Positions 5,401 through 8,070 are shown, counted from the stretch's first letter. The stretch is DNA of 64,000 nucleotides from Ostrea edulis (GCF_947568905.1 NC_079165.1:77624001-77688000); one strand, 5' to 3'. Numbers and translations: made by a program. The notes: generated from the letters alone by a model not told the origin.

Positions 5401-8070
5401 AGCTGAGAATTGCATATAAAGACTGAAATATTTACACAGTGGAAATAATTCAAAACTCTTATATGACATATATTTATGATCATTTTTTCCTTTCAAATTT
5501 CTATAGAGCTTCATGTGTCAAAGATGCATACAGTAGTTGACAGTATTTGGCAAGATGCCAAACACCGATTTGAATGGGCTGCATGTCAACTGCTGAAACA
5601 TGGAAAATGATCGGTGTTAGTATCTCTTGATCTAAAATACAAGTTGTTTATAATTTTATGAAAATATAAAGTTAACTGTAAATTTTCTTAAAATATTTCT
5701 CAGTAAATCATCAGAAGAACCCAAAAGAAACAAACTCCAGTTTTCCATCAACTAAAAATCATGTGACCTGTCTTTGCTGTTCCATTCAGTATTCTCACTT
5801 TAATACATGTTTATTATCAGAGATCTAAAACATAGTCAGTTGGTGTCGATGTAAAGAGCGACATTTATATGTATTTTTATTGTCATAATTAGTGGGGTAC
5901 GACTGTCACCAGCAATGTAAGAAAATTTTCATAATGTGCTTGCACGCATCATTTAATTTCCCTGTAATGCTGATGATTTGTCTTTATGACACAAAACCAC
6001 ACCTCAATACCCAAATAACTTCAATTAAAACCCCTATTATGAATTTCTTGATTAAAAAAATATTCACAATAAAGACCATAAAAAAACTAATTCCTTTCAA
6101 AGCCAAAACAAAATAAAACCAACAAATTTTCACTGATCGTGAAAATTGATTTTTCTGTGATTATTTTCTAGATGACAGACTTACCTATGTAGTCACCGTC
6201 GAAGTTCCACATGCGGACAGTGCAGTCGTTGGAGGCAGTCATCAATAGTCTGTGTTTCTCCACCAGCTCCATACACGTGATGCTGTCCACGTGTCCACGC
6301 CAGCTGTGTAGCACTGAAAGACAATTCAACTCCAATCAACACGGAAATAGTTACCTTATTCACCAGAATAGAATAATCTAGAATGTTCTACACTAAGTGG
6401 AAGTAGGTATGGGGGTTCACAATTTTATATCTGGATTTGAATTTCACTGAATCAGAGATAATTTAGCCCAAGTCCCAAACAGATTCATATTTCATTTACT
6501 TAGCTTATTAAAACCTAACAGGTGCATTGACAAAGCAACTGCATTCATAAATAAGAGGGCAACAACCACAGAGAATGGACAATTTTCAGTCACAAAAACT
6601 CATTCAAGGCTATCGGCTCGGGTGAGCTAAAAAACGGCATGGTGTTATGGGTGCATATTTATATGTGAATACAACATATTCCTCTAATCCTTTATAGTGC
6701 ATGATAGTATTGATGTAGTACACGATAGTATTGATGTGTATCGGTCAGCCGGGTTCGATCGCCGGTGGCCAGACAGCTCAGTTGGTAAAGCACCTGACTA
6801 GAGATACAGGGGGCCTGGGTTCGAATCCTGGTCTGGTCCGTTGCGTTTTCTCCCTTCCTGTTACATTTGGTGCCGTAGACCAGCCCCTGGAACTGACAGG
6901 TGAAAATGCCTGCCAGGGGATTAAGATCCTAGGTTGATGTCTTCAGGTGTGAAGACATTTAAGTAGGGAGGAATAAAGCGGTCAGCCGGTTTCGATCGAC
7001 TGTGGCCAGATAGCTCAGTTGGTAGAGCTCATGACTAGAGATTCAGGGGGCCTGGGTTCGAATCCCAGTCTGGTCCATTGCATTTTCTCCCTTCCTGTTA
7101 CAGATGTAGTACATGATAGTATTGATGTAGTACATGATAGTATTGATGTAGTACAACACATGTAGTGCTAATTCATGAGAGTACGTGCCAAACAAACAGT
7201 AGCCTAAAATTCCACTAAATTTTGAATTCACTAAAAATAAGTACATAATACAGAAGTTGATTCCTTTATGCTACAAACATTCATGACAAACATTTGTCTT
7301 TTTTCATTCTAAACAAGATATACTGTGAGCAATGCTCACTAAGAATACCCCCTGCTTACCCCAATCTCCCAAAGGGTGTTGTTAATAGGTATACATTACC
7401 TCTTTCCTGAGTGTAAAAATATGGTATGCATTTGTAGAAGAAAATGGAAGATATAGTCCAAACACAAATCCATGGCATAAACCTATAATTTTGACCTTGA
7501 GATCAAAGGTCAAGGTCATAAAGAGGTCATGAATGTACATGACACATGGTGATACACTCATGTCTTATGGTATGACTATGTCAAAACCCTATAATCAATT
7601 TTGACCTTGAGGTCAAAGTTCAAGGTCATATAGAGGTCATGAAGGTACTCGACACATCGTCTCATGGTGATACACTCATGTGTCAAATATGATATGCCTA
7701 TGTCAAAGAACAAAGAGGTCATGGCCCGGACATGAATCCATTGTAAAAACCTTTAATTTTGACCTTGAGGTTAAGGTCATATGGAGGTCATGAAGGTACA
7801 TGACACATCGTCTCCTGGTGATACACTCATGTGTCAAATATGGTATGCCTATGTCAAAGAACAAAGAAGTTATGGCCCGGACACGAATCCATTGTAAAAA
7901 ACCTTTAATTTTGACCTTGAGGTCAAGGGTCAAGGTCATATGGAGGTCATGAAGGTACATGACACATCGTCTCATGGTGATACACTCATGTGTCAAATAT
8001 GGTATGCCTATGTCAAAGAACAAAGAAGTTATGGCCCGGACACGAATCTGCACAGACGGACAGACGGATG

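Follow-up and report, generated by a model that had tools for sequence, protein, structure and literature searches.

The 64,000-nucleotide stretch of Ostrea edulis DNA analysed here (the window; C2:77.62 Mb in the 894.8-Mb assembly) contains two direct repeats that each resemble a tRNA. The locus raises the question whether these repeats are tRNA genes, SINEs, part of a satellite or the termini of a retroelement, and, if the last, how such an element would be transcribed and primed. With high confidence, we read positions 6737-7102 as an old and fixed Helenus-type TRIM insertion, a gene-less LTR retrotransposon with a tRNA-derived unit in its LTRs.

The element, its insertion site and its lineage

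The element measures 366 bp and has the form LTR-interior-LTR in direct orientation. A direct-repeat comparison aligned 6742-6865 with 6979-7102 at 90% identity and an offset of 237 bp; extended to the termini, the LTRs are 129 bp each and diverge by 11.6% (K2P 0.127), in agreement with the approximately 12% given in an earlier note on this DNA. The same note had described an LTR-PBS-PPT-LTR mini-element, and all of its parts were located, including the 108-bp interior (6866-6973) and the flanking GATG duplication. The features are as follows.

6695-6736, no strand: left part of a 21-bp minisatellite; its final 4 bp, GATG (6733-6736), are the left target-site duplication (TSD)
6737-6865, plus strand: 5' LTR, 129 bp, TG...CA ends
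6752-6760, plus strand: second B-box-like motif GGTTCGATC, read from the sequence and kept across the family alignment
6767-6839, plus strand: tRNA-like unit in the 5' LTR, A and B boxes present (39.9 bits with Rfam RF00005, E 1.8e-6)
6846-6849, plus strand: TTTT run in the 5' LTR, 7 nt past the tRNA-like unit, resembling a Pol III terminator
6868-6883, plus strand: primer-binding site (PBS), preceded by a TT spacer and complementary to the 3' end of the host tRNA-His-GTG plus CCA
6884-6919, plus strand: interior hairpin 1, outer stem of 7 bp and inner stem of 5 bp (fold prediction)
6936-6959, plus strand: interior hairpin 2, 10-bp stem and tetraloop, immediately 5' of the polypurine tract
6961-6973, plus strand: polypurine tract (PPT), AAGTAGGGAGGAA in the window copy, adjoining the 3' LTR
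6974-7102, plus strand: 3' LTR of 129 bp, its first 5 nt being mutated in the window copy
7004-7076, plus strand: tRNA-like unit of the 3' LTR (Rfam RF00005, 50.7 bits, E 2.1e-9)
7083-7086, plus strand: TTTT run in the 3' LTR, 7 nt past the tRNA-like unit
7103-7155, no strand: right TSD GATG (7103-7106) and resumed 21-bp minisatellite (TRF, empty-site rebuild)

The mutated start of the 3' LTR reads TAAAG in place of the family form TGTAG. The interior was predicted to fold with a minimum free energy of -41.3 kcal/mol (z -3.9) into two strong hairpins. The element has no coding capacity, its longest stop-free stretch being 66 aa. Within the 30 nt 5' of the tRNA-like unit lies a CCGG/CCGG hairpin (window 6749-6765) with GGTTCGATC in its loop; it is kept in the family, is also present in Helenus-1_SaGl and may be a remnant of the T arm of another tRNA.

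The element sits within a minisatellite (TRF period 21). When the element and one GATG were deleted, the rebuilt empty site consisted of four successive units in perfect 21-bp register. Exactly 4 bp were therefore duplicated at insertion, and the restored register confirms the GATG TSD that had been proposed inside the tandem repeat. Together, the TG...CA ends and the exact 4-bp duplication show that the element entered the minisatellite by an integrase-type reaction. Two separate studies each supplied DNA contigs that contain the left insertion junction, hence the insertion is not private to one of them. Given the LTR divergence of 11.6%, the mutated 3' LTR terminus and the damaged stems described below, the window copy has most likely lost its mobility. 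Downstream, a very abundant repeat starts at ~7311/7312, with contig loose ends and a summed depth far exceeding those of the TRIM; beyond it comes a tandem repeat with a 151-bp period (2.6 copies, window 7597-8000).

Helenus elements are TRIMs with tRNA-derived LTRs (Kojima 2024, PMC10886601). In pteriomorph bivalves 51 families have been described, all with 4-bp TSDs and some with tRNA-His PBSs, and Gypsy elements have been proposed as their partners (PMC10886601). Ostrea edulis is absent from Table S1 of that study, and no paper in the literature searched links Helenus with this species. Two published oyster families, Helenus-1_SaGl from Saccostrea glomerata (LTR 129 bp, interior 103 bp, 4-bp TSD) and Helenus-2C_CGi from Crassostrea gigas (LTR 128 bp, interior 101 bp, 4-bp TSD; PMC10886601), were compared by eye from DataS1, without an aligner, with the majority line of our family alignment, which also served as CpG mask. 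By this count the O. edulis LTR differs from that of Helenus-1_SaGl at ~8/129 positions (~94% identity) and from that of Helenus-2C_CGi at ~17/129 (~87% identity). All three families have in common a tRNA-His PBS starting with TTTGGTGCCGT (an assignment also made in Fig. S2C, PMC10886601), two interior hairpins and a PPT ending in AAGGAGGGAGGAA. The O. edulis family is set apart by its 108-bp interior and by an extra A in the PBS after TGGTGCCGT. Further differences lie in the hairpin stems, which vary compensatorily between the three families (by eye), and in the LTR outside the tRNA-like part. The 8-nt anticodon loop CTAGAGAT is identical in Helenus-2C_CGi and differs at three positions in Helenus-1_SaGl. 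Judged by these sequences, the O. edulis family plainly belongs to the same lineage as both, which bears out the Helenus/TRIMp3 identity put forward for the window copy, its layout and 4-bp TSDs recurring in the genome and its LTR and interior being homologous to those of published oyster Helenus. The Helenus kind and this lineage were thus already published for oysters.

The TRIMp3 class, i.e. [quoted passage not shown] Both share this kind of unit with Helenus but derive it from 5S rRNA instead of tRNA, are flanked by 5-bp TSDs and have no sequence in common with the O. edulis element.

The tRNA-like unit and transcription

Both LTR units exceed the gathering score of the Rfam tRNA model (29). 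The 3' unit has its A box at 7011-7022, its B box at 7055-7065 and the 8-nt anticodon loop; the box motifs TAGCTCAGTTGG and GGTTCGAATCC (A and B boxes) are present in the LTRs. ARAGORN called the 3' unit alone, as tRNA-??? with a 4-base anticodon that corresponds to the 8-nt loop, and the variable loop is short in both units, as expected from the earlier description of an 8-nt anticodon loop and no long variable arm. The unit may derive from a tRNA-Thr(AGT). The earlier description had further claimed intact stems. The tRNA resemblance stands, given the Rfam scores and the A and B boxes, but the stems of the window copy are damaged: the 5' unit has one D-stem mismatch and G-U pairs within the T stem, and the 3' unit has an anticodon-stem mismatch. 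The cloverleaf was obtained as minimum-energy fold for neither window unit; in a less decayed family member it is the minimum-energy fold (-29.6 kcal/mol).

The stem-covariation check suggested in the earlier note was run within the genome. For the cloverleaf, 93% of cells were paired, with compensatory counts no better than those of slid controls; RNAalifold predicted only 4 pairs on 25 interiors, and the two specified interior hairpins showed no significant covariation and no excess over shuffles. Because the copies decay neutrally, covariation within the genome is uninformative rather than negative. Between oyster genera, only 1/73 positions of the tRNA-like part differ from Helenus-2C_CGi, against ~16/56 in the remaining LTR (Fisher p 4e-6, by eye), and selection in the replicating lineage has therefore constrained the tRNA-like part much more strongly.

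The two TTTT runs are the only runs of at least four T in the element, and the TTTT after the tRNA-like unit is retained in >90% of 100 LTRs. With A box, B box and conserved TTTT, each LTR would by sequence form a complete Pol III gene. As the TTTT follows the 5' unit by just 7 nt, a Pol III transcript should often stop after ~85 nt. Cassandra LTRs reportedly also carry a Pol III terminator. The terminator problem is not taken up in the published work consulted; Kojima (2024) acknowledges that the promoter function of Helenus is unvalidated (PMC10886601).

On these features a coherent model of the template RNA can be built. The A and B boxes of the tRNA-like unit would act as internal Pol III promoter, and the genomic RNA would begin near position 31 of the 5' LTR, with its 3' end at the TTTT in the 3' LTR. 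The LTR would accordingly divide into a U3 of ~30 nt, an R formed by the tRNA-like unit and a U5 of ~16 nt. To make such a template, Pol III would have to pass the first TTTT, the identical run in the 5' LTR, and stop at the second. As suggested in the earlier note, the fold may also serve RNase P/Z processing or packaging. The two interior hairpins are candidate signals for the proteins of a partner element. A bolder extension, which we regard as rather improbable, is that each of the ~2,400 LTRs in the genome releases a tRNA-shaped RNA of ~85 nt with the conserved 8-nt anticodon loop, while the rare read-through RNA serves as template and the tRNA fold acts as R in strand transfer or packaging. 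If this were true, the leakiness of a Pol III terminator would set the transposition rate, and the small RNA could affect the host, for example as a source of tRNA fragments or as a decoy for tRNA-binding factors. In one run labelled 'RNA?' (X1, from another organism) the contigs are just 90-95% alike to the repeat and give no proof of expression.

Alternatively, the element could be a conventional TRIM that owes its transcripts to Pol II or to host-gene read-through, with the tRNA-like unit as the fossil of a SINE or tRNA insertion that has no promoter role. The TTTT directly after each unit, which would end Pol III transcripts early, speaks for this explanation, as does the unvalidated promoter function noted above. 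Against it, the LTR extends just 30 nt 5' of the tRNA-like unit and so gives a Pol II promoter little space, T runs of four or more are confined to the two positions behind the units, and the unit is the better conserved part of the LTR between oyster genera. We consider this alternative unlikely.

It is very improbable that the LTR units are working tRNA genes and the element a vehicle of tRNA gene expansion. The Rfam scores above threshold, the perfect cloverleaf of undamaged copies and the terminator-like TTTT after each unit would all fit a tRNA gene, but a functional one would have a 7-nt anticodon loop and an isotype-consistent body, and the 8-nt loop is the same throughout the family alignment. 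Non-CpG variation is 4.8% inside and 2.7% outside the tRNA-like part, i.e. the two decay about equally, and most Helenus units have been judged non-functional (PMC10886601).

The family in the Ostrea edulis genome

With the whole element as query, 3,275 first-look candidates were obtained from the genome; 56 of them were scored, and every one was full-length with 88-94% identity. Signature 25-mers, searched with at most 2 mismatches (reversed controls gave 0 matches for both), occur 2,357 times for the anticodon arm of the LTR with the 8-nt loop and 966 times for the interior. The LTR:interior ratio of 2.4 implies some solo LTRs, consistent with contigs that depart from the element exactly at 6865. 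The copy number is about twice that of Helenus-2C_CGi, for which 1,124 LTRs and 402 interiors have been reported (PMC10886601).

The detailed comparison set comprised 19 loci of simple LTR-interior-LTR form. All start with TGTA and finish with GTTACA, and none lacks the TT spacer or the PBS. The PPT, likewise present in all, reads AAGGAGGGAGGAA in 17/19 copies and is otherwise a one-base variant. Perfect 4-bp TSDs flank 15/19 copies and three more match at 3/4 bases, an agreement with a chance probability of ~3e-33. In the other 18 copies the LTRs of one element diverge by 1.6-7.0% (mean ~3.5%). This is near the 4.5% that separates different copies and fits a burst with neutral decay thereafter. 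At 11.6%, the window copy is among the oldest of the family.

A reading as a fragment of 1.5 units from a satellite whose 237-bp unit is LTR plus interior, and which spread through recombination and not through retrotransposition, gains from the existence of arrays with period 237, such as that with 7 LTRs at C8:57.55 Mb. It is nonetheless highly improbable: dispersed copies share exact end nucleotides and carry 4-bp TSDs, contig loose ends accumulate exactly at 6737, 6865 and 7102, and tandem arrays are a known secondary product of TRIMs (biv-TRIM, PMC6934838). The biv-TRIM of bivalves (Satovic et al. 2019, PMC6934838) occurs, like the O. edulis family, as solo repeats and LTR(n)-interior(n-1) tandem arrays; it is a different family, whose repeats measure 202-218 bp and whose interior measures 77-80 bp, and it has neither a clear PBS nor a tRNA-like unit.

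Besides the array on C8 (L002), LTR-interior arrays of this period were seen at L009 (C4:43.24 Mb), L018 (C9:1.135 Mb), L030 (C9:29.67 Mb) and L040. LTR divergence within the array is 1-3% in four of them and ~20% in L040. At G000:C1:96013836-96014391, ten exact 25-nt anticodon-arm signatures at a spacing of 59 bp make up a short-period array that comprises only a portion of the tRNA-like unit. The genome also holds a second Helenus family (L053:1341-1465, equal to L033:1142-1214, as well as L070 and L071), characterized by the loop CTAGTAA(T), the ARAGORN anticodon 'agta', an LTR end in CTACA and the PBS TGGTGCCGT-T-GACCA.

Two independent insertions of tRNA-derived SINEs, coincidentally 237 bp apart, are excluded by the 15/19 perfect TSDs and the recurring layout, and we give this reading practically no weight: either repeat by itself does resemble the head of a tRNA-derived SINE, but dozens of loci show the same LTR-interior-LTR unit, enclosed as a whole by the 4-bp TSD, TG...CA ends, PBS and PPT are present, and neither a poly(A) nor a LINE-type tail is. 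The earlier note had proposed to look for copies that lack this layout and these TSDs as a sign of independent SINEs; the copies examined share the layout, and 15/19 have perfect TSDs. Like the Helenus LTRs, SINE2 elements contain A and B boxes in tRNA-derived sequence, in their case the head, and tRNA-derived SINEs are a likely evolutionary source of the Helenus LTR insert (PMC10886601). SINEs differ, however, in being single units that are mobilised by LINEs and have TSDs of variable length and 3' tails, in place of LTRs, PBS, PPT and 4-bp TSDs.

The tRNA-His primer and the search for an autonomous partner

Matching of the PBS to host tRNA 3' ends, which had been suggested for the Helenus-type element of the window, identified tRNA-His-GTG. 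A host gene for this tRNA lies at L032:1501-1572 on the minus strand, with the 3' end ...GGTTCGAATCCTGGTCACGGCA; the PBS of the element is complementary to the terminal sequence ...TCCTGGTCACGGCA. The family PBS, TGGTGCCGT-A-GACCAG, comprises 9 nt complementary to tRNA-His plus CCA, one extra A and 6 further complementary nucleotides. A tRNA-His variant with a base that would absorb the extra A was not found in the genome. The LTR end followed by an A-less form of the PBS occurs at 85 places, and in 35/85 the perfect complementarity runs on for 18 nt or more. Part of these A-less junctions are older subfamilies with an 18-nt PBS.

At some junctions the identity with the reverse complement of tRNA-His plus CCA continues further. 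By locus, the tRNA-His copies measure 18 nt (L050, L069, L078), 19 nt (L049, L073), 20 nt (L054), 22 nt (L059), 27 nt (L061) and 39 nt (L053:1521-1649 with the adjoining stretch), the four longest lengths occurring once each. The search pattern demanded 18 nt, and the mode at 18 is thus partly built in, shorter products being unsampled. Copies of 20-39 nt exceed any PBS encoded by the element, and the primer tRNA itself must therefore have been the template for their reverse transcription, which is direct evidence that tRNA-His primes the reverse transcription of elements with the LTR type of the window. The expected length of plus-strand strong-stop DNA is 18 nt. The 18-39-nt copies look like captured plus-strand strong-stop DNA, or like products of read-through past the usual stop at 18 nt. 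These junctions provide direct genomic evidence of the primer, which published work had inferred from PBS complementarity alone.

Some of the tRNA-His copies of 18-39 nt lie between inverted LTRs (L057, L071, L074, L075/L076, L077, L066 and L053) in the layout LTR, TT, PBS, AA, inverted LTR, which also occurs in LTR families that have no tRNA-like unit. A direct arrangement, LTR-PBS18-LTR, was seen at L058 and L067. Both forms are probably aberrant products of reverse transcription, i.e. snap-back or end-joined strong-stop DNAs.

The enzymes for this TRIM would be supplied in trans by an autonomous LTR element, probably a Gypsy-like one in view of the 4-bp TSD and the tRNA-His PBS. The genome was scanned for perfect tRNA-His PBSs. 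Three 9.9-kb loci with such a PBS (L079-L081) contain no ORF of at least 150 aa and no LTR pair. At two others, L084 and L085 (C3:89.45 Mb and C7:1.12 Mb), an LTR end ...ACTACTACA is followed by a G and an 18-19-nt tRNA-His PBS, and ~60 nt past the PBS an ORF starts with MATFGPSGKGKHDE. This ORF may represent gag from an autonomous element that uses tRNA-His as primer; it had no Pfam match, the LTR ends of both loci are unlike those of the TRIM family, and no link to that family was seen. The match to autonomous Gypsy/BEL families envisaged beforehand thus yielded no partner among the candidate loci examined (L079-L081, L084/L085).

For the annotation of Ostrea edulis, the family belongs in the repeat library under Helenus, and its ~2,400 tRNA-like LTR units will inflate the tRNA gene counts of the genome. 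For the TRIMp3 class, it offers clean material for two questions: how a Pol III transcript would pass the terminator in its own 5' LTR, and which autonomous element mobilises it.
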